Positions 1 to 62,706 of a stretch of DNA of 64,000 nt are shown one piece after another. Location of the stretch: the IMG/VR virus record IMGVR_UViG_3300025141_000016, positions 124,001 to 188,000 of that record; one strand, given 5' to 3'. The notes under the pieces were generated by a model. It searched no databases, was not told the DNA's origin, and saw nothing but the letters and a program-made list of their open reading frames with translations. The stretch's first letter is position 1. Every line of letters starts with the position of its first letter. A program made the translations under genes and the position numbers.

Positions 1-474
1 AAGCCCCTGTTCGGGGGAGACATTCGCCACGGCGACGTGGCTCTGGTCCTCGATGCGGGTGGGATCAAAGGTCAACTGGTCAAGGTGGAGTACACCGAGC
101 GTTGGGCCGAAGCCAACCCCGAGCAGACTTCCTACATCGCAGGCGAGGGGTGGCGAGAGCAGTTCACTTACCCAGAGGACTGCGTTGACGAGGAAGGCTG
201 GGAAGACGACGAGTGCATGGAACGGGCGTACCACGAGGCCGAGGTTGACTCTTTCCTTTGGAAATCCGACGAAGCTGAATGGCTCACGAAGCGGGAGGGC
301 GCTCCTCTCTCTGTAGGCGGGGCAATCACGGGGCTTCTCGTCCCCGATGAGCGCAGCAAGGGACACGCGGAATCACTCATGGGGGGTCTTGGGCTGGACT
401 TGCCGGTATTCATAGGGAGAGGAGCGTCGGCTGTGCGTGTTGCAAAGCGGTTTCTTCTGGGAGATGCCGCATGA
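1..474 (+). CDS. 5'-truncated hypothetical protein ending in the basic RGASAVRVAKRF motif
   Basis: Frame 1 is open from base 1 (KPLFGGDIRHGDVALVLD...); acidic core; the C-terminal motif matches the linker motif of neighbouring proteins. Confidence 0.75.
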   Translation, partial: KPLFGGDIRHGDVALVLDAGGIKGQLVKVEYTERWAEANPEQTSYIAGEGWREQFTYPEDCVDEEGWEDDECMERAYHEAEVDSFLWKSDEAEWLTKREGAPLSVGGAITGLLVPDERSKGHAESLMGGLGLDLPVFIGRGASAVRVAKRFLLGDAA

Positions 475-767
475 CTGCTACTGAAATCCTGAACCAACTC
501 CAGCAACACAACCCCGAGGCGCTGCTCTTGGAGCCCCGCGAGGTCTACGACAAGGCTCTGGTTGGGGTCACGAACACCCCTGACGACCATTGGCCGCGCA
601 CTAACGGCATCTGGGTAGCGGTGTATGACGAGGAACTGTGCCTGGAAGCCATCATGGAATGGCATGAGTGTGGTTACAGCGATGCCGCTGACTGGTTCGG
701 CCACAACACTTCCGGGGCATGGGCTGGGGAGGGCACTCCGACGTTCCGCTCACACGGCGAGGAATGA
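471..767 (+). CDS. Conserved phage hypothetical protein
   Basis: ATGA overlap with upstream stop; pattern ALVGV..VAVYD..C..AI..DAADWF.HN..GAW.GE.TP.F resembles a common small phage protein family (recognised from memory). Confidence 0.8.
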   Translation: MTATEILNQLQQHNPEALLLEPREVYDKALVGVTNTPDDHWPRTNGIWVAVYDEELCLEAIMEWHECGYSDAADWFGHNTSGAWAGEGTPTFRSHGEE

Positions 768-789
768 CCCAGAGCGCCCCCCTCGGGGC

Positions 790-804
790 GGTACTTCCTT
801 TATG
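790..804 (+). promoter_or_regulatory. Putative late-promoter motif GGTA-N6-TTATG
   Basis: Same spacing as copies at 10083, 15682, 18893 and 49744(-); each lies 22-35 nt upstream of a start codon. Confidence 0.5.
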
Positions 805-829
805 GGAAGGTAGGGTGGCAGGAGTGTGA

Positions 830-3800
830 ATGGAATCCCTACCCAAAATGCAGGCCGTTGTAGATCGGCTTCATATAGACGGGGTGTTGTGGCCTCACAT
901 GGATGTGTATTTCGACTACCAGCGGGTTCCCGCAAAGTTGAAGGATCATGCCGCATGGTGGGTGTATAGAGGCTCGCACAAAGATATGCTGTTCAAGGCT
1001 TGGCGTGCGCTCCCCCCAGAACAGAAGGAAGCCCTCGACATCGCCAACGAAGCCGCCCATCAAGGATCTACGCTGACCCTCTACCGAACCCCCACCGGAA
1101 CAGAGCACACCGATCATGCAGGGGCCTCCTTCACGACGGACAAGAGCTTGTGGGGCGACGAAGGCTACGCGGTGCGTGTGCCCGTGGGTGATGTGTTGAT
1201 CTCCTACAAGACTCCGGGCTTCGAGGACATCTTCAACAACCAACGATACGGGCACGAGAAGGAGGTCATCCTCAAACCGACCGCATCAGCCGCTCGGGTC
1301 GCTTCCCGGTACATTCGGGCAGGTGGGTCGTTTCCTGCTATGCAATCCGCTGTGGACCGGCTCTACAATGAGGGTGTCATCGACTACCCCATCGAGGTCC
1401 GGTACTTCGGCCCCAGTGGTAGTGGGAACGTCGAGATTCAACTCCTCAAAGACGGTCGCCCCGGTGACTACGCTGGTCACTTCTTCACGTCCAAGCACGC
1501 GGATGGGTGGGAATCTCCGAGCACCTTGCGGGGGATCTCCGATCCATGCTTGAAGGCATACCGTAAGGTGCGGCGCAAGAACAAAGGCGCAGGTCTATGG
1601 TCAGTCCAATGGGCTTTCCTGAAGGACAAGGCCCTGTGGGGTCACGGGCTTGGCAAGATGGCCTACGAACAGATCCTCAAAGACGCGGGCAAGTTTGGGG
1701 CTGTCGTGTTCCCTGCATGGTGCGCCACAGGAGGGTCCACTACTCCGATGGCACAGCGAGTGTGGGACTCCGTAGGGAAACGCCATAGCACCGAAGGGGT
1801 GGTTGTCATCCCCAAGAACCTCCGGGTCGCTTCGACGGTAGGCGTTGCGACTCGGTACGCGAACCGCACACTCACCCAACAGACCCAACGGCTGGAGAGT
1901 GCCGTCACAGCCTTCATGGACGCTCTGCGGGAAACGGGGCGAGCCATCGGAGGGTGGAGGCGCAAGCCAATGCCCCCAGGCACCCCGGCTGCTATGCGGG
2001 CTGCTGCATCCACCCTCTATGACCTGCTCGACATTCAGTTTGAGCGCGAGTACGACGCTGCCCGGTTGAAGAAGTACCTCCGCAGGGCCAAGAACCTGCG
2101 GAAACTGGTGGGGCAGTACCGTCAGGTGGCCGACGCAGAGGAGTTGGAGGAGGTCTACCGAGCACAGTCATCCAAGACCAAGGATGCCTGGGAGAAGATC
2201 AGGGACTACACCAGCGAGGTCATTTCTCTCCTCACCACTTTCGACTCGGAGCCAGCCGGAGGATTCCGCGTCGGGGGGATGAGGGTCGCCTTGATCCAGC
2301 AAGGGGGTGCGTCATGGAACGACGAGATGATCGAGAAGTTGAAGGCGGTCCTCGCAAAGACCGATGCTTTCCTCAAAGGACGAGGGCTCGGAGTGCTGAC
2401 CAAGGGTCTTCTCGTCTTTGCGTACCCCACCTCTGGGATCCCTGGCATCGGTTCGGCAAACGCCTTCTACAACCGGGCAAAAGATATTGCTGCCATCGCC
2501 GCAGGGTCCAACTGGTTCCGCAAATCTTCCGTGAACCGGATGGTTCAAACCATGGTTCACGAGTTGGGTCATCGAGCCTACTACCAGATCATCGGGAACA
2601 CAGGTCGCGGGGCCTGGGAAGGGTTCTTTGAAGCCATGCAGAGCCCTCCCGATGTGGATGGGATGATCCGACGGTGGAAGGCATGGGTGCAGCAAGCCAA
2701 TGACCCCAAGGAACAGCGCCGACGCAGCCATTTCGGCATGTGGTTCCCCGAGTTGTCAGGCCAGGACGCGGAAGCGGCTCAATGGTTGCTCATGGCAGTC
2801 CGATCACTGGGGATCCAGAAAGGGGAGAAGTTCGACTCGTACCGTGGGAACCCTACCCCCACCTCGGTAGCCGCTTTGGACGTGCTGGAAGACCGGAAGG
2901 ATGAGGTCAAGGTTTTCGCGGAGCCCGTTACCGCCTACTCCGCGACCAACCCATCGGAGTTGTTCGCGGAAGTGTTCGCCCACTACATCGCCCACGGTCC
3001 TCGCACCCTTTCACCACGAGTACGGGCCGAGTTCAAGCGGAGCATCCCCCAGATGAAGGTGGGCCGAGCCTCCATGACTCACCGCTTCGCCTATCAAGGG
3101 GGACACACGCCCCCCGACGACGGCGCACAGGCACACGATCTTGGTGCGGGCACCCATTTCCCAGCGGACATTCTGACCCACCCCGAGTGGTACACCGGAT
3201 TTCGGGGTCATTTACGGTCGTTCTGGGACTCCATTCTCAAAGCGCAAGGCAAGCCGGGGTCACGCATCTCGGTTTACCGAGCACTTCCCGGTCAGCACAC
3301 CACGTTTTCTTCGGGAGATTGGGTCACCCCCTCCCTCCGCTACGCACAGGATCACGCTGCGGGTGAGGAGGGATGGCACATCATCAAGGCCACTGTTCCA
3401 GCCCGAACCCTTCGATTTGCTGGAGATGACCTCGTGGAGTGGGGCTACTGGGGTCCGACCGTCGAAGGGAAGGTCGTTGGTCACGCACGAGCAGCGAACA
3501 GGAGTATCCCAATGAAGGTAGCCCTCACACGACGTATGGCAGCACGAGTCGTAGCCCGACACGTCCGAGACAAGATTGACTGGCACGGTCAGGTGGCAGA
3601 CCTGCGGTCACAGGTCGAGAACCTGCGGGTGCTCCGACAGGGCTACCGCAAGCAGATCGGAGACATTCGACGGGCGGTTGGTGCTCTGGATAAGTCACTG
3701 GCGGGTTCCTCGATGCACCGGGACATTCGGCAGGGGTTGTCCAGAGCGGTTCAGTCGCTCGATGGCCATGATCCCCGCACCACGTCGTTCCTGGGTCAAC

Positions 3801-3847
3801 TTGACTACCTCACAAGTCAGTACGACCAGATCGGGATGGGGCTGTGA
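830..3847 (+). CDS. Polyvalent multidomain protein (ART-like / GNAT / zincin metallopeptidase / ART-like / coiled coil), putative virion-packaged effector
   Basis: TLYR..SFTT..HEKEV (R-S-E ART pattern); LWGHGLGKMAYE (GNAT motif A); MVHELGHRAY plus ELFAEVFAHY (HExxH zincin); VYRALP..GDWVT..YAQDH (ART-like); domains separated by RVAxR[YF]-type linkers; RBS GCAGGAG. Confidence 0.8.
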   Translation: MESLPKMQAVVDRLHIDGVLWPHMDVYFDYQRVPAKLKDHAAWWVYRGSHKDMLFKAWRALPPEQKEALDIANEAAHQGSTLTLYRTPTGTEHTDHAGASFTTDKSLWGDEGYAVRVPVGDVLISYKTPGFEDIFNNQRYGHEKEVILKPTASAARVASRYIRAGGSFPAMQSAVDRLYNEGVIDYPIEVRYFGPSGSGNVEIQLLKDGRPGDYAGHFFTSKHADGWESPSTLRGISDPCLKAYRKVRRKNKGAGLWSVQWAFLKDKALWGHGLGKMAYEQILKDAGKFGAVVFPAWCATGGSTTPMAQRVWDSVGKRHSTEGVVVIPKNLRVASTVGVATRYANRTLTQQTQRLESAVTAFMDALRETGRAIGGWRRKPMPPGTPAAMRAAASTLYDLLDIQFEREYDAARLKKYLRRAKNLRKLVGQYRQVADAEELEEVYRAQSSKTKDAWEKIRDYTSEVISLLTTFDSEPAGGFRVGGMRVALIQQGGASWNDEMIEKLKAVLAKTDAFLKGRGLGVLTKGLLVFAYPTSGIPGIGSANAFYNRAKDIAAIAAGSNWFRKSSVNRMVQTMVHELGHRAYYQIIGNTGRGAWEGFFEAMQSPPDVDGMIRRWKAWVQQANDPKEQRRRSHFGMWFPELSGQDAEAAQWLLMAVRSLGIQKGEKFDSYRGNPTPTSVAALDVLEDRKDEVKVFAEPVTAYSATNPSELFAEVFAHYIAHGPRTLSPRVRAEFKRSIPQMKVGRASMTHRFAYQGGHTPPDDGAQAHDLGAGTHFPADILTHPEWYTGFRGHLRSFWDSILKAQGKPGSRISVYRALPGQHTTFSSGDWVTPSLRYAQDHAAGEEGWHIIKATVPARTLRFAGDDLVEWGYWGPTVEGKVVGHARAANRSIPMKVALTRRMAARVVARHVRDKIDWHGQVADLRSQVENLRVLRQGYRKQIGDIRRAVGALDKSLAGSSMHRDIRQGLSRAVQSLDGHDPRTTSFLGQLDYLTSQYDQIGMGL

Positions 3848-4326
3848 TGAGCGGAGCCTCTGCCCGTCGAGTCGCGTCCCGCGCTGTCGGGAAACGTCTC
3901 CAGCAGTTTTTCCACTCCCCCGAGATTCGTGCTCTTGCACCACCCGCAACCCGGAGTGGAGGTTCCCCCTGGATGCTGGGTGGGTGTCTGATCGCCGCAG
4001 AGGCCATCCAGAACATCTATGGGGGGAAACTCATTGGCTTGGATGCAGATGGTGGGGAGAAGCCGGGTGATGATGTAGTCCATGTCGTTGTCACTCACGG
4101 GGGCGGCTACCTTGATGCCCTCGGCTTCCATCGGAGCCTTGACGACATTCAAACCATCTTGGATAACAAATACCATTTGGATCAGCCGGTCTACCCGGTG
4201 CCCGGACGCTACGCGCTGAAAAGTGGAATCAAGCAAGACAGAGGGCTCTCTGACACCCTCGCGGACCTTTTCACCACGCCCAAGACAGCCCGAATGACGA
4301 AACAGATCGGGAAGGTGTTGCGGTGA
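3847..4326 (+). CDS. Putative papain-like (Cys-His-Asp) fold protein with N-terminal RRVASR motif
   Basis: GGCLIAAEA, HVVVTHGG and YLDALG give a C/H/D triad in order; TGATG overlap (alternative GTG start at 3844). Confidence 0.6.
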   Translation: MSGASARRVASRAVGKRLQQFFHSPEIRALAPPATRSGGSPWMLGGCLIAAEAIQNIYGGKLIGLDADGGEKPGDDVVHVVVTHGGGYLDALGFHRSLDDIQTILDNKYHLDQPVYPVPGRYALKSGIKQDRGLSDTLADLFTTPKTARMTKQIGKVLR

Positions 4327-6137
4327 TCCTCTACAGGGCCACGACCGACTCTATTGCCCGCCAAGGTGCTCATTTCACCGAGCACCTTGAGGATGCCGTC
4401 GCGTACACGGACAACCCCGGATTCGGGGGTTCCACCGTGTATTCGTATCGGGTGAGCCCCCGGAACGCTCTGGAAGTTGGCGATCGGGAAGACCTCGCAG
4501 AAGCCTACCTCGACCTGCTCGATGACGACCAGAAGTGGGAGTGGGACTACAAACTGGGTGAACCCCCGACCGCCCACCTTCTCGCACGCTTCTGGCAGGG
4601 TAGCGGCCTCATCTTTGTGTTCCATGTCCTTGAACACTTGGAGCGGGGTGTTCCAGATGTGGAGGAAGTCTTGGCAGACAAGTACGATTGGATCTCGTAC
4701 CCCGATGACTTCCCTGCGGGGTCTACGACATGGAAGTACCTTGGCACGGGGTCGTTGAAGCCGGACAGTAAAGACCCTCTCCACCGCAGAGCCTCTGCCT
4801 CCCGTGTTGCTCTCCGGTTCGCCACGGCCCGTGGCAAGACCTTGTGGCACATCACAAAGGATCGGAACTTCCGGCCTGACCCCGACTTCCGACCTGTCTC
4901 GGGAGGGGGTTGGGACACAGCCCGAAAGCCCATGATCTACGCGACGACCAGCCCACTCTACTGGCACAGAGTGAGTGGTGGGGGTGAGGGTCCGTGGACG
5001 AAGGGTCGTGCATGGGCAGCGGAACTGGAACTGTTGCCCGGTCACCCTCCGGTCAAGCGGGAAAACCCCTTGCGTCCACAGACGATCCTCGACCCGGAGT
5101 TCGTTCGGGTCAAGCGCGTGATCCCGGTGGAGCACGCCATCGCAGAGGAGACGGGGTATCTGGGCAACGAGTACGTCGGTGGCGATTACATCTACGGAAA
5201 GACCGCTGCCCCCTTCGTGGACGAAGGCATGGTCGGAGAGGATTGGGGGTCGTCCGCCTCCGGTCTGCTCGTCACGGACGGCGACCGGGTGCTCCTGCTC
5301 AAACGGTCGCCCTACGTTCAAGACCCCGGCTTGTGGGGAATCCCCGGTGGAGCCGTCCCGGTGGACTACGACACCGGGAAGCGGAAGGACGCCAAGAAGT
5401 CTGCACTGGACGAGGCCCGTGAGGAGATGCGGGGCATCCCGTCTGGCTCTGTGGTCGGCAAGCATGTGTTCCGCAAGCCTTCTGGTTTCTCCTTCACGAC
5501 CTTCGTGTGGGAGACGGACCCGGACTCTCTGGACCAGTTCACGCCCCGGCTCAACTGGGAGCACACCGACTGGAAGGTCGAGGACATTGGAGACGTGGGG
5601 TCAGGGACTCACCCAGGAGTGGTGTGGGTGTTGAAGAAGATGGGTCCGGGCCGAGTGGCGAGACGTGCCGGTCGCGAGCATTACCCCGGTCAGGTGGACA
5701 AGGGGAAACTCAACGCCTTCATGTCAGACTACAAGGGCATGACCTACCCGCCATTCATGCAGGACATGAGGATCTGGACAGACGACCCAAAAGACCCAGA
5801 CGCTCCTTTCGTGATGACAGAACTCAAACCCTTCGATGGCTACATCTCATTCCATGCCATCTACTCCCCGGACAAGCAGGGAGCGGGGCTCGCGAGCGGC
5901 GTTATCAAGAAACTGACGGCGATAGCAGACAAGCATGGTGTGTCCATGACGCTCGATGCCAAGCCCTTCAGCACCATCGACAACCAACTGAAAAAGTCTG
6001 ACCTCATTGGTTGGTACAAGAGGCACGGCTGGATTCGGCGGCCTGACTACGGCGACTCGTCGTCTATGATTCGCTACCCTGGCGGAAGTCGAACGCCACC
6101 CGCTCGTACAGCTTCCTTCACCCATGGGAGGGCGTAA
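4323..6137 (+). CDS. Polyvalent protein: two ART-like domains, NUDIX hydrolase, GNAT
   Basis: ILYRA..HFT..AVAY; LWHIT..IYATT; LLLKRS..LWGIPGG..SALDEAREEMRG (NUDIX box variant); QGAGLASGVIKKL..LIGWYKRHGW (GNAT); GTGA overlap. Confidence 0.8.
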   Translation: MILYRATTDSIARQGAHFTEHLEDAVAYTDNPGFGGSTVYSYRVSPRNALEVGDREDLAEAYLDLLDDDQKWEWDYKLGEPPTAHLLARFWQGSGLIFVFHVLEHLERGVPDVEEVLADKYDWISYPDDFPAGSTTWKYLGTGSLKPDSKDPLHRRASASRVALRFATARGKTLWHITKDRNFRPDPDFRPVSGGGWDTARKPMIYATTSPLYWHRVSGGGEGPWTKGRAWAAELELLPGHPPVKRENPLRPQTILDPEFVRVKRVIPVEHAIAEETGYLGNEYVGGDYIYGKTAAPFVDEGMVGEDWGSSASGLLVTDGDRVLLLKRSPYVQDPGLWGIPGGAVPVDYDTGKRKDAKKSALDEAREEMRGIPSGSVVGKHVFRKPSGFSFTTFVWETDPDSLDQFTPRLNWEHTDWKVEDIGDVGSGTHPGVVWVLKKMGPGRVARRAGREHYPGQVDKGKLNAFMSDYKGMTYPPFMQDMRIWTDDPKDPDAPFVMTELKPFDGYISFHAIYSPDKQGAGLASGVIKKLTAIADKHGVSMTLDAKPFSTIDNQLKKSDLIGWYKRHGWIRRPDYGDSSSMIRYPGGSRTPPARTASFTHGRA

Positions 6138-6139
6138 CC

Positions 6140-6448
6140 ATGGCACGATGCGGACGATGCGGGTTGTGGAACAAGTATCCAGACGACCACCACGAGCAGA
6201 AGCACGCGGGCGTGTGCATGTGGTATCAGATCCGACTCCAAGAGACGGACGTTTGGGAACCCCGTGAGTGCTCGGATTTCTTTGAACGCATCCCTGGCCT
6301 CCATGCGTTTGACCACTTCAAGTACAAGATTCAGCGGGACAACATCGGAGATGCCTACCGCACAGCGCGGTTCTCCAAACGTCTCGCCATCCTGGGGGCA
6401 ATCATCTCGGTGGTGAGCATCCTCCTTTCCTTGTGGGGTGCTTTATGA
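6140..6448 (+). CDS. Cys-rich small protein with C-terminal transmembrane helix
   Basis: CxxC at the N terminus plus further Cys; hydrophobic tail LAILGAIISVVSILLSLWGAL. Confidence 0.7.
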   Translation: MARCGRCGLWNKYPDDHHEQKHAGVCMWYQIRLQETDVWEPRECSDFFERIPGLHAFDHFKYKIQRDNIGDAYRTARFSKRLAILGAIISVVSILLSLWGAL

Positions 6449-7071
6449 CCAAGAAGATTAGCCGCCTCCGGGGCCTGTACGGAAAGCCCCTGTTAGCCCA
6501 AGGGACTACAGCCCAGGTCAGCCAAGACAATCTCAAAAAGGCTGCTGCCATCATCTTGAAGGCAATCAAGGCCGAGATTCGTCGTGACATAGCCAAATCC
6601 AGGGGGCTGCGCGGGGGCACCTATCCCCAACCCTACACGGATCGCGACCCTGTTCCTCTCCCCCAGACGGAACGCTTCGTCCGGTCTTTCTTCTGGAGGA
6701 TCAGCGGAGTCTCCACCGTCGAGTTCGCCTCGTCGTGGCCCACAGCCGTTGCTCATACGGAAAAGCCCACGACAACCGGCTTGGCAAAGCGAAACCCCCC
6801 AAGGACCACCCGCGCCCGTTTTGGCGCGGGCATCCCCATGAAGTGGCTCGTTCAACCCAAGGTCAAGATTGTCCCCATCATCACCCGTGATGGACAGGTC
6901 ATCTTTCGGACAGCCCCGCTTTCCTTGGACAAGGCTTGGATTCATCCGGGGTTTATGCGCTACACCTTCATCGAACGGGGCATCCGTAAGGGCAAGATCA
7001 AAGCCGTCCATGAACTCAAAGACGATCTTGTGCAGACGTTCCTCAACCAAGGAGCTTTGTTCCCACCATGA
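6445..7071 (+). CDS. Basic protein, possibly HK97-gp10-like neck/tail-completion protein
   Basis: ATGA overlap; C-terminal WIHPGF..FIERGIRKG resembles the HPG..PF pattern of gp10-like proteins; function tentative. Confidence 0.45.
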   Translation: MTKKISRLRGLYGKPLLAQGTTAQVSQDNLKKAAAIILKAIKAEIRRDIAKSRGLRGGTYPQPYTDRDPVPLPQTERFVRSFFWRISGVSTVEFASSWPTAVAHTEKPTTTGLAKRNPPRTTRARFGAGIPMKWLVQPKVKIVPIITRDGQVIFRTAPLSLDKAWIHPGFMRYTFIERGIRKGKIKAVHELKDDLVQTFLNQGALFPP

Positions 7072-7811
7072 CCCAAGGATACCGATTGGATGCGCCAGAG
7101 CCCGTGCTGGTGAAGGATCTCAACCTTATGGTTGGGAAGGAACCTGTGTGGGTGAGCCGGGAAGACATGCAGGGTTCCGACTGCCTCCAGGCTCTCCTAC
7201 GCATGGGAAAAGTGAGGGTATGGTCAGGACAGAGGTGTAGAGTGGCCAAAGAACCGAAAAGACCAGTTGCTCGGGCCGTTCTCATGTCACGCCCCTCGCG
7301 GGTAGCGCGAACCACCCCCACAACATCCACCTCAATCCCCGCAGCAGCCGCGACCCCTCCCGCGACCCCTCCCGCGACCCCAGCCGCATCGCCCACAACA
7401 ACCATTGTCCACACTGGGATCACGCCAGAAGAAGCAGCCAAAATGGCGCAAACCGCAGCCGAGGAGGCCGCCAAACAAGCGATTGCTTCGATGACCCCGC
7501 TCATGCAGTCCATGTTGGACACGATGCAGAAGTCGCAGACTCCCTCTGCAACCCCCGAGGATTTTGAAGCCCGCATCGAGCAAGCCATGGCCCGAGCCTT
7601 GGGGTCAGTTCAGATCGGCCACATCGCGGGCACGGATGGAAAGGCAGCCCCAACGGACGGCCCTGACGAGCCCGTGTTCATCCCGACGGGTATCGTGAAA
7701 GCTGACGCGGAGAGTCTGGATGTGCAGTCCAAGTCATCGGAAGATGATGGGGGACTGGACGACGCGGCCTCGGCCCTGAAGGCCCTTCGCAATCGAAAAC
7801 GGAAGAAGTAG
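7068..7811 (+). CDS. Hypothetical protein with Pro/Ala/Thr-rich linker and basic C-terminal helix
   Basis: ATGA overlap; ATPP repeats from a 12-bp tandem (GCGACCCCTCCC x~3 at 7350-7381); ends ALKALRNRKRKK. Confidence 0.75.
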   Translation: MTQGYRLDAPEPVLVKDLNLMVGKEPVWVSREDMQGSDCLQALLRMGKVRVWSGQRCRVAKEPKRPVARAVLMSRPSRVARTTPTTSTSIPAAAATPPATPPATPAASPTTTIVHTGITPEEAAKMAQTAAEEAAKQAIASMTPLMQSMLDTMQKSQTPSATPEDFEARIEQAMARALGSVQIGHIAGTDGKAAPTDGPDEPVFIPTGIVKADAESLDVQSKSSEDDGGLDDAASALKALRNRKRKK

Positions 7812-7821
7812 GAGATTTCCC

Positions 7822-8835
7822 ATGGCATCAAAGAAAGCAGCCCCATTGGGTGTCGGTTTAGACATCGGCACCATGAATCTTGTCTCGGCTCGTCGCACAG
7901 CGGACGGCTCGGTGGAGACGACCCGGATGCGGGATGCGTTCCTCGATCTGGATGCCAGCGCCAAGAAGATGTTGAAGCTCTCTGGGGTCAACTTCATCGA
8001 CCATGGGGAGGACGGGATCATCGTCGTTGGAGATGCAGCCATGGAGATGGCCAACGTGTTCGGACGCGAGGCCCGACGACCTTTGTCGCAGGGTTTGATC
8101 TCGGCAGGGGAGATGGATGCCCTTGATGTGTTGGGCGTTCTGGTCAAGAACGTCATCGGTGAGCCCGCCAAGGCAGATGAAGTCTGCTACTTCTCTGTCC
8201 CCGCAGCCCCCGTGGATGAGAGCCGTGATGTGGTGTACCACCGAGGCGTGTTTGAACGCATCGTGACCGAGTGCGGATACGAGCCCTACGCCTCCAACGA
8301 AGCGATGGCGATCATCTACGCCGAAACAGCCGCCGACGGGTTCTCGGGCCTTGGCATCTCTTTCGGGTCAGGGATGTGCAACCTCGCCCTCGCTGTATCT
8401 GGGGTCGAGGGGATGGTGTTCAGCGTGGCTCGGGGTGGTGACTGGATTGATGCTGGAGCCGCGAAGGCCACTGGGTCAACCCAAAGCCGGATGTGCGCCA
8501 TCAAAGAACGGGGGGTGGACCTCATGGACCCGAAGTCTCGGGAAGAGGAAGCCCTCATTCTCTACTACAAGAGTCTCATCGAGTACGCCCTGGACCAGAC
8601 GACCCGTGAGTTCATCAAGATCAAGGACCGCTTCTCTCTCCCCCGACCAATCCCCATCGTGGTGTCGGGTGGAACAAGCCTCGCAGGCAACTTCCTGCCG
8701 TTCTTTGAGCAGGTCTTTGAGAAGAAGCGTCGGAAGTTCCCCATCGAGATCAGCGAGATTCGGCACGCGAGCGATCCCATGAACGCCGTCGCCCGAGGTC
8801 TGCTCATCCAGGCTATGCAAGAGTATGAGGACTGA
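7822..8835 (+). CDS. Actin-like ATPase (MreB/MamK/FtsA-fold, ASKHA superfamily)
   Basis: Phosphate-1 GLDIGTMNL, connect NEAMAI, phosphate-2-like ISFGSGMCN, adenosine VSGGTS; RBS AGGAG. Confidence 0.85.
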   Translation: MASKKAAPLGVGLDIGTMNLVSARRTADGSVETTRMRDAFLDLDASAKKMLKLSGVNFIDHGEDGIIVVGDAAMEMANVFGREARRPLSQGLISAGEMDALDVLGVLVKNVIGEPAKADEVCYFSVPAAPVDESRDVVYHRGVFERIVTECGYEPYASNEAMAIIYAETAADGFSGLGISFGSGMCNLALAVSGVEGMVFSVARGGDWIDAGAAKATGSTQSRMCAIKERGVDLMDPKSREEEALILYYKSLIEYALDQTTREFIKIKDRFSLPRPIPIVVSGGTSLAGNFLPFFEQVFEKKRRKFPIEISEIRHASDPMNAVARGLLIQAMQEYED

Positions 8836-9412
8836 ACGGTAGAATCCTACGCTTCCACAGGTACAGGCGAAGACGGGTCTTTCCCTTCCAGCCCATACGA
8901 CAAGTGAGGTTGTAGAGCCGTTGGGTATCTCGGGCATCTTTGAGGGCGGTGTGTGCCCCTTCCTTTCCCCATCCGAGGAAGTCGCGGATCGGGTCTAACC
9001 CCAACCGAGGAAGCCCCAAGGGGGTCAGATGCTCATGGGCGAGAGTCACGGTATCTACCTTGTGGTAGGGAACACGCTTCTGGAATCCAGCCCGTTTCAG
9101 GTTGGAGTTGATCATCTCCTCGTCAAAGGAGACGTTGTGACCGCACAGCGCACTTCCTTTGAGGAAGGCCAAGAGGTCAACCCCCACTTCCTTCATGGTG
9201 GGGGCATCCTCCCATCGTTCGGGGGCAGCGGCGTACCCATTGATTTCCAGTGCTTTGGGATGGGCTGTGTGGATGTGCTCCGGGCGGATGAGAGTGTGGA
9301 AGACACGCTCGTTCCCCCCTTCCACCCGGATAGCAGCGACTTCGATGACCTCGGCTACGGAAGAATCGAGCCCGGTGGTTTCAGTGTCTATGAACGTAAT
9401 GGCCTTTATCAA
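8813..9412 (-). CDS. DEDDh 3'-5' exonuclease (DnaQ/PolIII-epsilon-like)
   Basis: ExoI FIDTETTGLD, ExoII GHNVSFDEEM, ExoIII HTALKDA; start re-chosen as TTG at 9412 behind AGGAGG. Confidence 0.9.
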   Translation of the reverse strand: MIKAITFIDTETTGLDSSVAEVIEVAAIRVEGGNERVFHTLIRPEHIHTAHPKALEINGYAAAPERWEDAPTMKEVGVDLLAFLKGSALCGHNVSFDEEMINSNLKRAGFQKRVPYHKVDTVTLAHEHLTPLGLPRLGLDPIRDFLGWGKEGAHTALKDARDTQRLYNLTCRMGWKGKTRLRLYLWKRRILPFSPHTLA

Positions 9413-9541
9413 GAACCCTCCTGTGTTCCTTATTACACGAAAAGCCTCGCCCACGGACCCCCCCTTGCAAGGCTCCCTGTGGGGGTTGGGGGGTTGGAGT
9501 TGGCGCACAGCGGGTAAAGAGGGAGAGGGAGAGGAGTATCC

Positions 9542-10087
9542 TTGACTCGGAAAATGAAACCCATCGAGATCCCAGTACCAGGGACGATCAGGGAGGCTGT
9601 GTTCTCCGTGGCCGTTCCTATTGGCGATGGCACGTTCACGACCGTAGGCACCCTGATTGAAGAAGCGCAGCGTGCGTTGGGCAGAGCGAACGAAGTCCTC
9701 TCCACCAACGCCCTGGTTGCCCTTGCAGCCCAGGACATGGCCCGCCAGTATCGGCGCAGAGGACACTCTTCCATCTCCATCCGTGCTGACGGTGAAGTGG
9801 TGTTTCGGGTTCAGTACACGGACCCCCAGGATCCCCTTCCCCCCGAGCCTCCGAGTGCTCCTGGGGGTGCGGGCCTCCCTCTCCTCTCGGCCTTGCGTGA
9901 GAGGGCGGGCGAGTTGGGGGTAGACATTTCCGACCTGGGTCGCCAGAAGCGCAAGATCATGCGGAGGTTGGCGGAAGCCTCTCTCCCCCCAGACTCCCCA
10001 AAGACAATGGAAGAACCCCCCCCACGACTACGGGATGAGGTCACGACAAGCACTCCCCTCCACACGACGAAGTTGCCCGGTCGGTAG
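9542..10087 (+). CDS. Hypothetical protein
   Basis: TTG start with strong GAGGAG RBS; 181 aa. Confidence 0.65.
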   Translation: MTRKMKPIEIPVPGTIREAVFSVAVPIGDGTFTTVGTLIEEAQRALGRANEVLSTNALVALAAQDMARQYRRRGHSSISIRADGEVVFRVQYTDPQDPLPPEPPSAPGGAGLPLLSALRERAGELGVDISDLGRQKRKIMRRLAEASLPPDSPKTMEEPPPRLRDEVTTSTPLHTTKLPGR

Positions 10088-31168: not shown

Positions 31169-34100
31169 GTGGGCTTCAATCTCGATGGCTATGTCCTACG
31201 TCCGGCTCGCGTGGCTTCAGGGAACTCCCCTGACACGAACGAGGCGACTACGGGCGTGGATCGCAGTCAAATGGACGGGGCGGAAATGGCGACCCTCGGC
31301 TACACCGTGGCACCCACGGGTGGTCGTTTTACGACAGCCGTAGAACCCTACGGCGATATGTACCGGGCAGCCGTCCTCCAGAAGCCCGAGAGCCGCGAAG
31401 CAGAGGAGACGTACTGTGTGTTCGCGGCCACCACTGGTTCGTTGAGCACAGTGGAAAGCGAGTTCCTGGCGCAGTCTGCATCGAGTGATGCGGTTACCGT
31501 CGTCCCTGGAACCCTCGCCGTAGAGGGTGGCGTTTGGAACGATGGGACCGACACCTTCCTCGTCTTGGACCCTGGGGGGCGAGACATTAGTTCCGTGTCC
31601 TCCCTGGTCATCATCAAGGGACCGATTGTTCCGGGGGCTCCTCCCACCTACGTCACGATCACAGATGGGGGGAGTCCGGGCTTTTTGAGCCAAGACCCCT
31701 CGATTGGGAAGGTCGTCCTTGACTCCACCGCCTTGGACCCCGCCTACCTCAATGGCGGATTCTCCAAGGAACGTGGGGACCAAATCCTCCTCGTCACCTA
31801 CATCCTGGGAGGGCCAACCTTTTGGTGGACGCGGAATGACCAAGACGTGACCCGTTTCGGGTGGGACGGCAAGAACCAACGATGGAGCCCTCTCCAGGGC
31901 AGCCTCCCCCGTGACCTGGGGGCCGTCAATGGTGAGGATGAGTTCAAGTTGACCCCACCCCTCACCCGCTTCGCTGTGGGGGACATGCTCCCTTATGACG
32001 ACACCACTACGGATTCTTATGCGTTGGTTCGGTCTGGGCTCTACCCCGACTCCATCTCGACCCCACTGACCATCCTCGTGGTGACAGACGAGGAAGCCGC
32101 AAGCGGCACATGGAGCGGGTCATGGATAGACCCCGCGACCGGCACCGCTGCGGATGCTGTGGTGGGGGTCTACAGCGGGGATCTTCTCCTGAACCCCACT
32201 TACATCGAGGCCAATGCTGGACGCACCCTCTGGTACAACCCGGAAACCTTCGTCGTTGACGCGGATGGGGATCTGGGGGAAGTGGCCGACTTCTACCCTC
32301 TCGCGTTGGTCCCCACTTCCATCGGCTTTCCAGCCCTGTCTCCAGTTCCCGGTCCAACTGACCGTCCCTTCCTGCGGATCGGGTCGCGCCGTTACTTGAC
32401 CCCATACGCCGTGGACACGGATGCTGATCTCCCCACTCCTGCGGACTTCCCGGCGGGGAACTTCTACTGGTCCCGTATGACAGGCCGCATCGTGTTGTCC
32501 AAACACGACATTGACCGTTGCACGCCTGGGGCATCCACCACGAACCCCACCCCTGACTTTTCTGACTACGACATTTTCTACCTGGGGGCTCGGCTCTACT
32601 ACGACGGGGTGTCTCTCAACACGCAGCCCCTCCCGGTAAAGGCACCCACCCCGGTCTTCGATGAAGCGGGGCTCCCGTTGGACGGCGACCCCGAGACGGT
32701 CCCTATCTTTGGGAAACTCTACATCCCGCGTGCGGTTCCCCTTCCCCCTCCTGGGATCAGTGGGGTGCTGTGGGTGCCGGACGGCTCGGGGGACACACCT
32801 TCCATTGATGAAAAAACCATCCCTCTTACGCGCCCCAACGGGTGCGGAATGATGCGTGAGATCGAGGGTATCGGGGACACGTTCTTCTTCGGTGAATCCT
32901 ATGCCTACGAGAAAACCGATGTAGAGGAGTACGACGAAGACCTCCCCGTTCTGAAGTTCAAGGTGCCCAAGAACACAGTCGCCGTATCCCGGCTGCAAGA
33001 CCCGGATATGACAGGCTCCCCGTTGGAAGAATACTCCCGCCTCCAGATGCGCCGGAGGCTCGTCAAGGGGGAAGCCCTCTACTTCCTACAGGCCCAGATT
33101 ACTCCCTCGGTCTATGCCGACGAGGCCCGCATCTTCTCCCGCTTCGGGGAGCCCTTCACCCTCCTGGGAACGGAAACGCTCACCTTCAATGTGGATGACT
33201 TCGCGGGGGGCTACAAGTGGGTGGCCACCACATTGGGTGCGGGAGAGTTCTCTGCTGCCGAGGTAGCGGCTGACATACAGGCCACCTCCGGTGTCCCCGC
33301 AGGGTCCGTCGGGTCGCTACGAGGTCGTATCTTTATCCGTGACGCTGACCTCAAAATAGGGAAGGTGGAGATTGGATGGGATCAGTCAGACGCGACCGAC
33401 CTGTCTGGACCTGCTGCCCTCGGTTTCTTGCCCGGATGGCGCGTATCCCTCCCCCTTCCCGCAGCCCCAGCACCTAACTTCTGTTGGCTCCCAGACAACG
33501 GGGCCGCGATGGGAGTGTTCCGCAGCCCGGTCAACATGGACCGGAGAGATGACACCCCGGACATTCGTGCCAAGAGCCAGTTCGATGACCTGCTCCTCAC
33601 GGACAACATCACAGGGATGCCTTTCTTCAGCATCAACCAGCCGCCGTTGGAGGACATGCCAGGGTACGACGAGGGAGTTCACTTCCGTATGGCTATCGGG
33701 CTCCTCACGGTGGACTTGAAGAACTACCACACCACTCTCGGGGTTGGGATCAAGTACGACTGGGTGTTTGACCGGCTGGTCTGGACCGAGGAAGGAGAAA
33801 CCTCTGCAACCCAGGTGGCGTTCCCCACCTCAACCCTTCAGTTGGACCACCCTGCCATCCTTCCCGAGACAGTCTCGGCCCTCGCCATGGACGACACCGC
33901 TTTCGGCCTTCGGGTGAAGGGACCGCTGGATGACTCCTATGCCACCAAGATCCGGGGTGAGGATTTCCTCATGCCTGGAGGGGGTCAACCGGGTCAGGCA
34001 CTCTTGGTGTCTGTCGAAGGTGGGGTCAAGGCAAGCGGGGGGTGCGGCCAGTTCACCGCAGGCACCACCACGTTTGAAGACCCCAATGTCCCAGACCAAG

Positions 34101-37100
34101 ACGATCTGGCTGCCGAGGTGTTGGTTGGCTATCTCCTCCACGTCCTCACCGGGGAAGCCGAAGGGGTCTACCAGATCACAAAGGTCACAAGCGGACCCCC
34201 GACCGTACTCAACGTGTTTCCGGCTTTCCCGAGCAGCCAGACGACTGCCCAATGGCGCGTATACGAAGCCAAGCCTCGGGACGAGATCGACAACACTCTC
34301 GTAGCTGATGTGCAACAGCAGGTGATGAACCACCTGCCCTCCGAGCCTTTCAAGATCCGGCTGCTCACCTCCACCGGCACCGTGGGGGGATCCCTTGTGG
34401 CCGAGGTGGCCGATGCCATCTCCTCCAACCGCGTGATCTCGTTGCGTTTCGGGTTGGGGGAGGGTGGAAACGCCAATGAGGCCACCCCTGCCTATCTGGT
34501 GCGCGGGGTAAAGATGGGCACCGTGGTCGCCACCGGCCTGGAAATCCCCGACACTTCAGACCTTCACTTTCAAACCTCCCTTGCGGGTGGGACGGCGTAC
34601 TTCAGTTTCCGGGTGGGCGCTGCGGAGTTCACGAGCGGGGTCAACCTCGTCATGGTGGCCGTAGCAGGGACACCGGCTGCGGGAACCGTAGAGATCGTCG
34701 CGGGCAGCGGAGAAGTCGTCTTTGCCGACGATGTGGTTTCGGACCTCTCTGGGAGCACCGTCTTCTACGACCAACAGTTCCTCAACCCAGACGATCTCAC
34801 CGCAGGTGAGTGTGAGATCAACGCCTCCGACGGAAGCATCAACATCTCGACTTCCGATGCAGGCACCTATGCCGGTGAGACGGCGTACTTCGTGGAGGAG
34901 ATGGTCACGGTCAACGATCTCGACGTGAAGACCTCTCCCGTCAGCGGGAGCATCCTCTTCAAGAAGCCCTTGCGGGCCATGCAGATCGTTGAAACCAACT
35001 ACTTCCAGGCTGACACGAACGGGGACAAGGCCACCGACACCGACGGCAACTACATCGAGGTCACCGAGTTCCTTCCCCTCATCGTGAAGCTGGAGGTGGC
35101 GACTCGGATTGATGACTACACGTTCTCCTTCAACCCGACCGGGAGAACGTACTCCGAGGTAGTCGATCCCTTCATGTGGGTCGGCGTGGAACTCCAGAAC
35201 TTCGCAGGCATAGAGACAGCCTTCATCGAGGTAGACGAAGACCTCGGCATCTACCTCATCAAGTTGACGAGTGCCGTGGAATCCACGGACGAGGTGAAGA
35301 TCAACTACGGCGTGCTGGAAGCCTTTGGAGGCGAGTCAGCGTACACCGTCTCCACACCTCCGGTGTACCGGAAGCCGTTTTTTCTGTTGGAGGGTCAAAC
35401 GTCCTTCGACTTGGAGACTGACCGGTCAGCGGATTTCCCGGTGGGGCATCTCCTCATGCTGGGACCGCAGCCCCTCTACATCAAGACGGTGGCCTACGAC
35501 ATCACCACTGACCTCACGACAGTCACCATCACCCCGGATCCCTTGGGGGAACTCGGGAGCCGTGCGGTGGGACGGGATTCAGGGCTTACCGTCTCCGATT
35601 TCCCGGTGTCTGTGACCCTCTCTCCAACAGACACAGAGGGCTTCATGCCCACGCTGGACACCTCTACTGCAACAGGGACTCCCTTGCTTGCCGTGGATCG
35701 GGGTCAGTTGGAGGTGGTCTTCTACGGGGATGTGCGGCAGTACACCAAGCCCAATCACCTGCTGGAGATTGAGGAGTGCCCCTACATCATCATCAACTCC
35801 TCCATGTCTGATGATGGTCGCAACACCATCGTTGAGATCGCCACCCCAGCCTACAAAGCCCACGACAACAGCAACACGGTGCGGATCAGTATGCGCCCCG
35901 TTTACCAGCCCAGCCCCATGGAGTTTGCTGGGATTGCCCCTTTCGTGACCAGCGAGGAATACAACCTCTTCCTCATGGGGGCGACAGAGAGCGGGGTCGG
36001 CGTACCGGGCAAGGAGTTGATCGAGGGAACCCACTACACGACGGACGCAGCTACGGGGGAGATCATCTTCCAGACCCCCACACAGCCCCCGTTGAACCCC
36101 GGAGAATGGCTCCACTTCCGCTACACACGGCAGGTAGTGGTGAACCCCTTGGTGAAGGATGACGCGCTCCTATACCCGCTCTACAAGGGCAGCTACCTCT
36201 ATATGACGGTCCCCTCGGTCCCCAACAGGCTCCTCGGGAGCGTGTTGCGGGCCAAGTACACCTACCGGAACCCCGATTCTTTCTACTTCTCCACCCTTCC
36301 TATGAGGAACTACCTGGGAGACGTGGCCAAGGTATCCGCCGCCAAGGGCGGGTCAGCACCCTCGGGAGGCCCTGTCCTGGCGTTCCCCGGCGAGTCCAAC
36401 ATGGGAAGCCAGGGAGCCATGGGGTTGCGGGGGGAAGCACAGGACTACCGTGACCAAGACCGGGGAGGACGTGTCTACGTCGAGTTCTTCAACGGGGTCA
36501 TTGTGGCCTTTGAGCAAGTGCTTGAAGCCATGGATGGTCGCATCATCGGGGACAGAGACGGGAAGTTCCTTTTCTTCCTCGGGCGTGACAAGCGGTATCC
36601 ACCTCCCGGCTACGAGGACTCCATCAGCGGGGAGTTGAACCCTCGCCTCATCTGGCGCGAGGTCATCGAGAACTGGTCCCCCTCCGACTACACCGACAAC
36701 GATGGGTGGTACATGGAGGCGGATCCGGTATTTGACCCCACGACAGCGGAGATCCCCGACACGGGGGAACGCCCTGGCGCTCCCGATGGAATAACCCCGG
36801 ACCCCCACTCCCTCTCTTTCTACACGGGTCGGCAGCGCCATCGGGTGAAGAACGACATGGACGACCGCCTGTTGATCGGGTTCGGTCGGCCTCGTGGGCT
36901 CGCTTTCCTGTTCCCAAAGTTCGACGTGCCTGGGAAGTTCAAGGACATGTGGCAGGACCACGAGTACAGCCGCCTGTTCCCAGAGAAGACCACCCACTTC
37001 ACGCGGTTGTTCCCCGGCCTGGAAGCGGTCATGGGGGCAACGGGCTTCACAGATCCGGGCTACTACTCCTCTGGTCGTAAGATCGAGGTGCCTGGACCGG

Positions 37101-50538: not shown

Positions 50539-51615
50539 ATGACTGTTTACGCCGAGTACATCTGGATCGATGGGGTCCAGCCCACACAAACGGTACGGTC
50601 GAAAACCAAGGTGCTCTGGGGGCACAACGACGGGGAAGTCTTTTGCGACAACCCCCTCGATCCTGACTGCTACCCCCATTGGGGGCATGACGGCTCCAGT
50701 ACCGGACAGGCCGAGGGCGGTGACTCCGATTGCGGGTTGGTCCCCGTCCGGGTCTTCAAGGATCCCATCCGAGGGGGCAACCATGTCCTCATCATGTGCG
50801 AGGTCACTGATGCAGACGGCACCCCTCACGAGTCCAACTCCCGAGCCCTGCTGCGTGAGGTCATTGACTGCGTTGGGGTGGAAGCCCAAAAGTGCTGGTT
50901 CGGCATGGAGCAGGAGCACACCCTGTTCCGAGGTTCACGCCCTCTGGGTTTCGGGGATGACCGCCGTTTCCCCCCATCGCAAGGCCCCTACTACTGTGGG
51001 GTCGGAGCCGATGAGGTCTATGGGCGCGATCTCATTGAGGAACACATGCGGGCATGTGTCGAGGCGGGCATCAGAATCAGTGGCATAAACGCCGAGGTGA
51101 TGCCCGGACAGTGGGAGTTCCAAGTGGGGCCGTTGCCCCCGCTGGAGGCAGGGGATCATCTCTGGGTGGCCCGCTGGCTCCTCTACCGACTCGGTGAGAA
51201 GCACGGAATCCACGCCACACTTGACCCCAAGCCTGTAGCTGGAGACTGGAACGGTGCCGGGATGCACACCAACTTTTCTACGGCGGCGATGCGAGAGGCA
51301 GGCGGCATCCAACACATCGAAGATTGGTGCCTCCGGGCGCGGGATCACGTCGAGGGACACCTCGCGGCCTACGGAGACGGCATCGAAGCCCGTCTCACCG
51401 GGAAGCACGAAACGTGTTCCTACCACCAGTTCAAGTGGGGGGTGAGTGACCGCACCGCCAGCATCCGAATCCCGATGGGAACAGCCAAGGATGGTTACGG
51501 GTACTTGGAAGACCGTAGGCCCAACGCAAACGCTTGCCCCTACGAAGTGGCATCCGTCATGCTCCGCACAGCCTTCAGTCAATGGCCCCAGAACGTAGTC
51601 CGACCTGCGTGTTGA
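50539..51615 (+). CDS. glnII: Glutamine synthetase, type II (GlnII/eukaryote-like)
   Basis: AEYIWIDG, DGSSTGQA, GPYYCGVG, NAEVMPGQWEFQVGP, DWNGAGMHTNFST, RLTGKHET, RTASIRIP, YLEDRRP; RBS AGGAGG. Confidence 0.95.
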   Translation: MTVYAEYIWIDGVQPTQTVRSKTKVLWGHNDGEVFCDNPLDPDCYPHWGHDGSSTGQAEGGDSDCGLVPVRVFKDPIRGGNHVLIMCEVTDADGTPHESNSRALLREVIDCVGVEAQKCWFGMEQEHTLFRGSRPLGFGDDRRFPPSQGPYYCGVGADEVYGRDLIEEHMRACVEAGIRISGINAEVMPGQWEFQVGPLPPLEAGDHLWVARWLLYRLGEKHGIHATLDPKPVAGDWNGAGMHTNFSTAAMREAGGIQHIEDWCLRARDHVEGHLAAYGDGIEARLTGKHETCSYHQFKWGVSDRTASIRIPMGTAKDGYGYLEDRRPNANACPYEVASVMLRTAFSQWPQNVVRPAC

Positions 51616-53734: not shown

Positions 53735-53883
53735 TCCCTCGCGAGGTGGTCTACTGGTCACTGGGACGGAGGACAGTCCCCTCCCAGATCGTGGACCCGC
53801 AAGCGCGGGAGATAACAGGCGAAGGGGGCTGGGCTTACACGGCTCAACTACCGAGGCTCAACGGCCCCCTTCGCGATAAGGGT

Positions 53884-54252
53884 TCAGATGGTACAGGCTT
53901 CGGCCAGTGCGACCATCTCGGCTCGGGCGGCTCGCCAGTTACGGCCAGCCACTCGTCCCTCCCAAGACCGGCCCTCGCTGCCGAGGCCGAGGCCGACGAA
54001 CACGTCAGGGTAGGAGTCGTAGTGCGCGGAGTTGCACAGGGTCGTGAGCCGACCCTCGACGGCTTCGTCTCCGGTCAAGAGACGGGCCAGTTCGTAGCGC
54101 ACCGGGAAGTCCGGTCGGCCCTTGTCGTAGTGCTTACGACGCGGCCAGGACACCACGAGCACACCGTTGGCGGCTTCGTGGAGGATAGTGAGGTCACCAC
54201 CAACGCAGTTGACGGTGAGCCGGTCGCCTTCACGGCGGGCGATGATTCCCAT
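53884..54252 (-). CDS. Hypothetical protein
   Basis: ATG behind GGAG; protein-like composition. Confidence 0.65.
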   Translation of the reverse strand: MGIIARREGDRLTVNCVGGDLTILHEAANGVLVVSWPRRKHYDKGRPDFPVRYELARLLTGDEAVEGRLTTLCNSAHYDSYPDVFVGLGLGSEGRSWEGRVAGRNWRAARAEMVALAEACTI

Positions 54253-54464
54253 GTCAGTCTCCAAAGCAGGGGGTCAAAGAAAGCGCAGATGCCGCCACCC
54301 AGCCCGATGCCTCGGGCATCTTGGGTGTCGTCGTGTGCATCCCGCATAAATGTCGCTTCAAGGTATCAACCCGCTTGAGGCACCGGGCGTTGCTCTACCG
54401 TCATCCCTGCTCTGGCAACCGTCAAGCAGGGGGCTTTGGCTGGTCGTTGAATCCCCCGTCCACT

Positions 54465-62696: not shown

Positions 62697-62706
62697 CCCA
62701 CCCCCC

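Follow-up and report, generated by a model that had tools for sequence, protein, structure and literature searches.

The 64-kb stretch of DNA analysed here (hereafter the window) belongs to a 297,104-bp viral contig of IMG/VR, IMGVR_UViG_3300025141_000016, and near-identical contigs were found in several marine metagenome runs. Five tightly packed genes on the same strand (ORFa to ORFe; ORF, open reading frame) fill the first 6.2 kb of the window. This cluster and a gene further along (ORF-F) encode repeated copies of a short basic peptide, which we refer to as the tag. The tag is enriched in these proteins, is conserved at the peptide level and sits at protein termini and at the joints between modules. 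An earlier note on this DNA had drawn attention to eight such peptides, and all eight were found there in plus-strand ORFs, five of them strong matches and three degenerate (1823-1858, 3062-3088 and 5649-5666). The genes and tag copies are as follows, with scores in bits from the matrix described below.

1 to 474, plus strand: ORFa, starting about 105 nt before the window and 192 residues long in full; a single module ending in tag 1.
418 to 453, plus strand: tag 1, RGASAVRVAKRF, at the C-terminus of ORFa with a 6-residue stub before the stop codon; 19.4 bits.
471 to 767, plus strand: ORFb, a member of the tagged cluster.
830 to 3847, plus strand: ORFc, 1005 residues, a five-module polyvalent protein (modules C1 to C5).
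1277 to 1312, plus strand: tag 2, PTASAARVASRY (TASAARVASRY at 1280-1312), at the joint of C1 and C2; 27.1 bits.
1823 to 1858, plus strand: tag 3, RVASTVGVATRY, at the joint of C2 and C3; degenerate, with G in place of the first R.
3062 to 3088, plus strand: tag 4, GRASMTHRF, at the joint of C3 and C4; second half degenerate.
3530 to 3562, plus strand: tag 5, RRMAARVVARH, at the joint of C4 and C5; 24.7 bits.
3844 to 4326, plus strand: ORFd, 160 residues, with tag 6 at its extreme N-terminus.
3850 to 3882, plus strand: tag 6, SGASARRVASR, of which GASARRVASR (3853-3882) represents residues 4-13 of ORFd; 16.8 bits.
4323 to 6137, plus strand: ORFe, 604 residues, in the order E1, tag 7, E2 with a NUDIX domain, weak tag 8, E3.
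4785 to 4820, plus strand: tag 7, RRASASRVALRF, in ORFe; 15.9 bits.
5649 to 5666, plus strand: tag 8, GRVARR, at the boundary of the NUDIX domain and E3 in ORFe; degenerate and below the matrix threshold.
46287 to 48839, plus strand: ORF-F, 850 residues, with three tag copies and a C4-like domain.
46317 to 46337, plus strand: N-terminal tag of ORF-F; 11.3 bits.
46632 to 46667, plus strand: weak tag of ORF-F.
47739 to 47774, plus strand: strong tag of ORF-F; 16.7 bits.

Tags 3, 4 and 8 lie below the threshold and were counted solely by their position at module boundaries mapped with homologs. Tag 3 aligns with the N-terminal tags of stand-alone C3 homologs, the first half of tag 4 (IPQMKVGRAS) is the conserved end of C3 with a proline that is nearly invariant in the family, and the boundary at tag 8 is backed by homolog P0164, which ends precisely at the position of GRVARR. 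ORF-F was absent from the earlier note, which had seen no copies of the motif in tail or baseplate proteins; that observation would fail for ORF-F if the gene belongs to a tail/baseplate block, an assignment made from sub-threshold matches in neighbouring genes only. A ninth candidate copy, NVASRY at 54349-54366 on the plus strand, was rejected as probably spurious. Its ORF (53746-54378), which ends with ...C-A-S-R-I-N-V-A-S-R-Y-Q-P-A, has an atypical GC content (guanine plus cytosine) by codon position, overlaps a more protein-like ORF on the opposite strand, and is probably no gene.

A six-frame translation of the window contains the pattern AS..RVA.R five times, each time in a plus-strand coding frame, against a count of about 0.004 expected from a rough estimate based on amino-acid frequencies; one occurrence, at 47745-47771, was missing from the earlier note. 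For an independent assessment, we used a scoring matrix of 14 columns built from 38 instances in distant homologs only, with the window and its close relatives left out, and circularity is thereby avoided. On the 57-ORF proteome of the window, this matrix gave six matches of 15.9-27.1 bits (ORFa residue 146, ORFc residues 156 and 906, ORFd residue 9, ORFe residue 161 and ORF-F residue 491) and a further match of 11.3 bits (ORF-F residue 12), compared with a mean of 0.15 matches above 12 bits in shuffled proteomes. The tag copies differ in their synonymous codons for Arg, Val, Ala and Ser, which argues for selection on the peptide and not on the DNA, and DNA identity among them is only about 70% over 25 nt. 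A DNA repeat or recombination hot spot as the main cause was ruled out on both grounds. The core R-[VI]-[AVLSG]-x-[RK]-[FYHW] appears 43 times among the 149 top-ranking homologs versus 4.6 times in shuffles, and 40 of the 43 matches coincide with a protein terminus or with a module boundary that had been mapped.

To map the modules, we searched ORFc with HMMER against 1.84 billion representative proteins and obtained 1878 matches; a profile search of a set of 5.8 billion proteins returned at least 28 proteins and added little. The homologs, all annotated as "hypothetical protein" in their sources, match ORFc piecewise over residues 16-156, 163-347, 345-746, 750-885 and 901-1005, and each of these five stretches is also found on its own or combined differently, in proteins of up to 3995 residues. 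The matches thus end at residues 156/163, 345-347, 746-750 and about 885/901, coinciding with the motifs at residues 150-161, 332-343, 745-753 and 901-911. The proposal that the motif separates modules and always falls at domain boundaries or termini is therefore borne out in ORFc. An all-against-all BLAST comparison of 14 modules found a single similarity, between C4 and the C-terminal part of ORF-F (F3, expectation value E 5e-9), and excludes a repeated homologous domain. The modules of ORFc are the following.

830 to 1276, plus strand: C1, a possible ADP-ribosyltransferase.
1313 to 1822, plus strand: C2.
1859 to 3061, plus strand: C3, a helical bundle and a gluzincin-type metallopeptidase with HELGH at 2558-2572 and SELFAEVF at 2954-2977.
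3089 to 3529, plus strand: C4, the most widespread module, matching the PHROG family "ParB C-terminal domain" (phrog_2579, E 4e-30).
3563 to 3847, plus strand: C5, for which the sequence suggests an alpha-helical fold.

The C3 family spans about 400 residues, and its H, E, H and two E residues (H-E-x-G-H and E-x3-E) are invariant in 56 sequences, a gluzincin signature that apparently marks an intact metallopeptidase. The AlphaFold2 model of C3 has a mean predicted local distance difference test score (pLDDT) of 90, and in it a helical bundle at the N-terminus precedes an alpha/beta part that resembles a peptidase; Foldseek found weak matches (E >0.03), mostly to M1 zinc peptidases and also to lethal-factor peptidases. 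C1 fell into protein-atlas clusters with EspN, DRAT, ADPrib_exo_Tox and NarE, and its motifs YRG (965-979), SFTTD (1127-1141) and HEKEV (1253-1267) can possibly be read as those of an ADP-ribosyltransferase. C4 yields a lead to the ADP-ribosyltransferase clan from the protein atlas only, and neither C1 nor C4 has a Pfam match for these leads. C4 occurs in proteins of up to 3995 residues, matches phrog_2579 again in ORF-F at residues 629-701, and in Mycobacterium phages, Kostya and Bask21 among them, is fused to ParB-like nucleases as their C-terminal part; it owes its PHROG name to this fusion. The NUDIX domain of ORFe (PF00293) scores 21.7 bits, above the Pfam cutoff of 21.1.

Lone genes keep the tag. 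The stand-alone C1 homolog P0093 carries a tag at its end, the 186-residue protein P0007, 87% identical to C2, is a lone gene in an unrelated neighbourhood and retains its C-terminal tag, and the stand-alone C5 homolog P0079 begins with MRRTAQRVVARY. The whole ORFa module recurs inside the 3182-residue protein P0122 with the same joint flanking it. The same peptide is found in relatives of 30-60% identity, and a matrix scan of 173 proteins located 73 copies. N-terminal copies account for 25, and in 24 of these the first Arg lies 4-10 residues from the start; another 22 are C-terminal and followed by a stub of 2-21 residues; the remaining 26 are internal, at module joints. About two thirds of the copies (47 of 73) are thus terminal, in single-module proteins, even though each terminal 30-residue zone makes up only about 4.5% of all residues in the 173 proteins. 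Single-module C3 proteins of 30-40% identity begin, for example, with M-T-T-P-I-A-T-R-V-A-A-R-Y or M-R-P-S-A-A-R-V-A-R-R-F, and others finish with R-V-A-A-R-Y and a few residues. Among 45 such proteins, 12 carry only an N-terminal tag, 12 only a C-terminal tag, and none carries both (Fisher p = 0.012, uncorrected for relatedness).

Tag copies in 20 related viral loci occur in genes adjoining the C3 gene on the same strand, and one protein of 1467 residues has copies at residues 6, 646 and 898. Very distant relatives with GC contents from 44% to 62% retain the tag where lone genes have a free end, and a 2531-residue protein of a phage with 44% GC preserves the versions R-I-A-S-K-F and R-M-A-S-K-Y. 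The loci L006, L009 and L027 have the gene order terminase, portal, C3 polyvalent protein and then tagged proteins of 604, 669 and 1467 residues. C3 homologs are also encoded on very large phage contigs, namely the 659-kb L002 and the 94-kb contig of P0009, which encode ribosomal protein L12, EF-Tu-like, CoaE and tRNA-binding proteins. We looked for a cultured relative through the topoisomerase-like module that follows tags in low-GC relatives; it led to Xanthomonas jumbo phages, whose genes are tagless. Among 50,697 deposited phage genomes, positions 1-8000 of the window had zero nucleotide matches, and C3 had no protein match in these records. The matches of C4 there were confined to Mycobacterium phage genes for ParB-like nucleases and a few others, and they were set aside as uninformative about packaging.

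Close relatives (57-87% identity) have swapped modules precisely at the tag. In P0002 and P0162, C3-tag-C5 stands alone. P0163, P0166 and P0094 continue from the same C5 end in frame into the tag, and in P0163 the chain runs via ...Q-I-G-M-G-L-R-L-D-S-A-R-R-V-A-S-R-H into a different module. P0164 joins C5 and its tag directly to a NUDIX module, so that different genomes carry module D, module X or NUDIX after the same C5-tag. Likewise, P0003 has the ORFa tail LPVFVGRGASAVRVASRY within the protein, as the joint that follows C3. In the window itself, the reading frame of ORFc closes with ...Q-I-G-M-G-L shortly ahead of a tag, which stands in a different frame at the start of ORFd. Four metagenome runs yielded contigs that match over the ORFc/ORFd junction with zero indels, and the gene split is therefore real. 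The ORFc/ORFd (3827-3850) and ORFd/ORFe (4303-4326) junctions have CAGATCGGGA.GG.G... in common, after which the stop and start codons overlap (GTGATGA and GGTGA). Each shifts one frame back, relatives have the same junction in frame, and the arrangement looks like translational coupling.

The consensus of the distant copies reads P/A(-4) S(-3) A(-2) x R V A x R Y/F/H L over about 12 residues. Positions -6 and -5 are variable outside the window, and a basic residue occurs there only in the window copies. The basic K/R-x-A protease specificity proposed in the earlier note is therefore not retained, since its defining residue is not conserved in distant copies. The joint is bipartite, with an upstream half [ILV]-P-x-h-[KR]-x-A-S, which forms the C3 end with the near-invariant Pro, and the downstream R-V-A-x-R-Y peptide. 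Sequences similar to the upstream half also end C1, C2, C4 and ORFa in the window. Many single-module genes stop directly after the upstream half, and many others begin a few residues before the R-V-A half. Two AlphaFold models each show a folded core that reaches as far as the upstream half, with a short helix predicted over the tag. The model of C3 has pLDDT values below 50 around both tags flanking the metallopeptidase module, with a short helix at tag 3 and a fall below 50 from S onwards at tag 4; the homolog model has values below 50 at its N-terminal tag and about 53 at its C-terminal tag. The expectation that the motifs would lie in flexible linkers is thus supported by the models, which predict low-confidence segments beside the C3 domain. 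We also considered the tag as an integral helix of the C3 fold supplied from either end, and found this unsupported, as both models leave the tags at low confidence outside the core. As an amphipathic helix capped by Ser, the tag would have R0 and R4 on the same side and V1, Y5 and L6 on a different one, and P/A-S would suit a capping box.

Other joint peptides were noticed as well. A second linker peptide, S-P-L-M-L-Q-P-D-Y-G-T-S-N-A-A-L-P-R-E-G, lies in ORF-F (48057-48116, plus strand) and is common to the C-terminal tails of several C3 homologs (P0171, P0173 and P0020), where it sits between the domain end and the R-V-A-x-R-Y tag. In other lineages (P0049, P0101, P0108, P0053, P0072 and others), the C4 boundaries have A-R-T-A-S/K-T-A-S or R-R-N-P-E. 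The joint peptides may be lineage-specific variants of one principle.

The interpretation that we favour, tentatively and a little short of calling it probable, is that the tag serves as a portable docking or address peptide of polyvalent effector modules and at the same time marks their joints. The tag would be a transferable peptide of about 12 residues that polyvalent effectors carry in flexible stretches, either at one of their termini (N or C) or where two modules meet. The uncultured huge phages that encode them belong to one clade and were encountered here in marine metagenome runs. With about one copy per module at either end, unrelated enzymes, including ADP-ribosyltransferase-like domains, the gluzincin and the NUDIX domain, could be recognised by one common partner. 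Unrelated enzymes that each bear a single short helical peptide, flexibly tethered at one end or the other, show the format of an address or docking signal. A component of the assembling capsid would be the likeliest partner, with the modules being packaged and injected. It is the most economical guess because these proteins are polyvalent effectors, because the tagged genes follow terminase and portal in L006, L009 and L027, and because bacteriophage T4 provides a precedent (see below). The same peptide would mark the joints where modules fuse, split into genes or swap between relatives and, as a secondary step, the co-encoded gluzincin or a head protease may separate the modules there. Judged from sequence, packaging and cleavage are both plausible. 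A bolder version, in which, throughout a large clade of uncultured huge phages, any module with P/A-S-A-x-R-V-A-x-R-Y is loaded into the capsid and joined modules are freed by the co-packaged gluzincin, appears doubtful.

Somewhat doubtful, too, is the explanation that the tag is purely a protease recognition or cleavage site, cut at or near [KR]-x-A-S by the C3 gluzincin in cis or trans or by a prohead protease, with terminal copies as short propeptides or relics. It would account for the internal copies, for the bipartite joint with its near-invariant Pro and for natural gene ends that bracket A-S, as the mature ends of a cut polyprotein would. An intact HExxH...E-x3-E domain resides in the same protein with tags on both sides, ARTAS/KTAS or RRNPE stand at C4 boundaries in other lineages, and herpesvirus assemblin, which has the phage prohead protease fold, cuts at V/L-x-A|S. 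Zincin processing of polyvalent proteins has moreover been predicted (Iyer, Burroughs, Anand, de Souza and Aravind, 2017; PMC5512222). However, about two thirds of the copies (47 of 73) are at free ends of proteins with nothing to release, which argues against a pure cleavage site and favours an address. Whole tags persist down to 30% identity near C-termini, where stubs of 2-14 residues follow them, and near N-termini, 4-10 residues from Met, the proposed basic specificity residue is lost outside the window, and AlphaFold places neither flanking tag in or near a folded domain. Cleavage also leaves unexplained why single-module C3 proteins are tagged at one end and never at both. Of the two options raised in the earlier note, a loading "zip-code" accordingly fits the sequences better than a K/R-x-A protease site.

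A docking peptide could also address a non-virion partner, such as a host factor, a nucleic acid or a phage-made compartment, or let the C3 bundle recruit substrates. We consider this unlikely, even though it draws on the same format evidence as the capsid address and the tag is basic. The N-terminal four-helix bundle of C3 weakly matches bundles of the FAT-like type, whose ligands are short amphipathic helices (paxillin LD motifs in the case of GIT1 and p130Cas; probability 0.8-0.97, template modelling score 0.45-0.5 on the target), but such matches are generic, as designed bundles score equally, and the two AlphaFold models predict no docking in cis. A second peptide in the same tails, L-x-L-Q-P-D-Y-G-x-S-x-A-x-L-P-R, would suit several linker binding motifs. 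Quite improbable is a mere evolutionary joint, a linker cassette devoid of biochemical role that spreads by in-frame recombination as modules are shuffled. Close relatives do differ exactly at the tags (C5-tag followed by D, X or NUDIX; the ORFa tail in P0003), and gene fusions and fissions coincide with them, yet DNA identity of about 70% over 25 nt with differing codons is too little for homologous recombination and points to selection on the peptide, and free ends of lone genes keep it in very distant relatives across 44% to 62% GC. The tag is very improbable indeed as a structural element of a repeated domain or as a product of chance or composition in an Arg/Ala-rich proteome. The N-terminal copy in the C3 family is contiguous with the first domain helix, but the tagged modules are not homologous, the tag lies outside the confidently folded core in two models, and shuffled proteomes do not reproduce it.

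Several observations weigh against the capsid-address interpretation. The first modules of ORFc and of ORFe have no tag of their own, and 21 of the 45 single-module C3 homologs lack a recognisable one, so that the tag is not obligatory. The exclusivity of N- and C-terminal tags in C3 proteins is a weak test, confounded by phylogeny. Low pLDDT cannot separate a docking peptide from a plain linker. C4 is attached to ParB-like nucleases of Mycobacterium phages (Kostya and Bask21, for example) with no obvious virion context, and PHROG and Pfam scans of about 30 neighbouring proteins identified no capsid, portal or protease gene beside the cluster.

For an address peptide that works from either end, the cargo-loading peptides of encapsulins and the capsid-targeting C-terminal tail of the HK97 protease offer a comparison. 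They comprise about 10 residues on flexible tethers, are N- or C-terminal, are common to unrelated cargo enzymes with usually one per cargo, and bind inside an HK97-fold shell. The tag shares this format: it is a short terminal peptide on a flexible tether, carried by unrelated modules, with about one copy each. It differs in sequence and in system, its shell partner is hypothetical, and we know of no encapsulin counterpart to the internal polyprotein copies.

In T4, a short peptide of about 10 residues, the capsid targeting sequence, binds the scaffolding core, addresses unrelated proteins including an ADP-ribosyltransferase to the prohead and lies near a site of gp21, the protease that cleaves internal proteins and Alt (Mullaney and Black, 1996, as cited in PMC10052503 and PMC9026906). 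As described in these sources, the T4 sequence is strictly N-terminal and removed by gp21 at L/I-x-E, whereas the tag is basic, unrelated in sequence, positioned at either end or internally, and free of any Glu-containing site. Prohead proteases of giant phages use S/A/G-x-E (phiKZ gp175) and A-x-E (SPN3US gp245), which are likewise short motifs recurring in many head and ejection proteins, where they define propeptides (PMC10052503). By that account they have Glu at P1 and a small residue at P3, and all but one of the cuts remove an N-terminal propeptide; the tag consensus has no conserved acidic position and therefore no Glu at P1, spans about 12 residues, is probably helical and occurs at both termini. 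In phage P1, DdrB/Dar is a large protein with a C-terminal zincin that is proteolytically processed and incorporated into the head (PMC5512222); in the phage collection, it shows no sequence similarity to C3, and the two have no defined signal peptide in common.

The class of polyvalent proteins was described by Iyer et al. (2017; PMC5512222), who predicted that they are packaged and processed by zincins. The tagged proteins resemble them in stringing together unrelated enzymatic domains (ADP-ribosyltransferase-like, NUDIX and peptidase), to which relatives add 2H phosphoesterase and nucleotidyltransferase, in having an HExxH peptidase, the commonest partner, and in being phage-encoded. One related group has them beside portal and terminase, the surroundings typical of packaged polyvalent proteins according to that study (PMC5512222); near the cluster in the window itself, no head gene was identified. 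With five independent modules and an HExxH/E-x3-E site in ORFc and a NUDIX domain above the Pfam cutoff in ORFe, they combine at least two disparate domains, as polyvalent proteins do. Membership of ORFc in the described polyvalent families is not established, as it has no Pfam match at E up to 0.01 and only weak structural matches to M1 and lethal-factor peptidases. Here, a defined peptide is present at every joint and also at the free ends of single-module genes. Keyword searches of PMC5512222 brought up no conserved inter-domain or terminal peptide, and Pfam and PHROG models do not capture the tag. The protein class and the idea of processing by a peptidase (PMC5512222), as well as short address or cleavage motifs in phage heads (PMC10052503), are already on record. 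What differs is the sequence, charge, length and positional freedom of the tag, although after a limited literature search an earlier description is possible.

Polyvalent effector proteins are common in phages and conjugative elements. To our knowledge, the delivery and separation of their domains have been no more than a prediction since 2017, with no signal defined. The tag makes module boundaries recognisable in proteins for which Pfam and PHROGs give no annotation, offers a route to listing candidate co-delivered effectors of uncultured huge phages, and turns the questions of packaging and cutting into simple experiments with one peptide and one peptidase. Were it a loading tag, it would represent a second, unrelated capsid address of the T4 type and possibly a cargo-loading tool. 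Were it a code for encapsidation and processing, sequence could reveal which effectors such phages inject, and attaching the tag to foreign cargo could bring about its loading.

As for the surroundings of the cluster, an actin-fold protein of 337 residues is encoded immediately downstream (7822-8835, plus strand). It matches Pfam Volactin (PF25216) over its full length (E 2e-75) and is a Volactin-type actin homolog of a huge phage. It is followed by a DNA polymerase exonuclease-like gene (8813-9766, minus strand; phrog_192, E 5e-35), and upstream of the window L001 encodes a calcineurin-like phosphoesterase (1908-2696, plus strand). The tagged cluster is therefore flanked by replication or metabolic genes and by no recognisable head genes. 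Among the roughly 30 neighbouring proteins, only tail-type matches were obtained, all sub-threshold: one protein matches Phage_base_V (PF04717) with 18.4 bits (cutoff 23.8) and weakly a PHROG baseplate-assembly family, and another has a weak tape-measure-like match. Between these two proteins lies a single ORF of 3818 residues (31169-42625, plus strand), which has no tag copy and no Pfam match at E up to 0.01. Further along, the window encodes a glutamine synthetase-like protein (50539-51615, plus strand; Pfam Gln-synt_C, E 2e-22, and Gln-synt_N, E 2e-9) and two DNA methyltransferase-like proteins side by side (61833-63762, minus strand; phrog_67, E 3e-31 and 7e-22).

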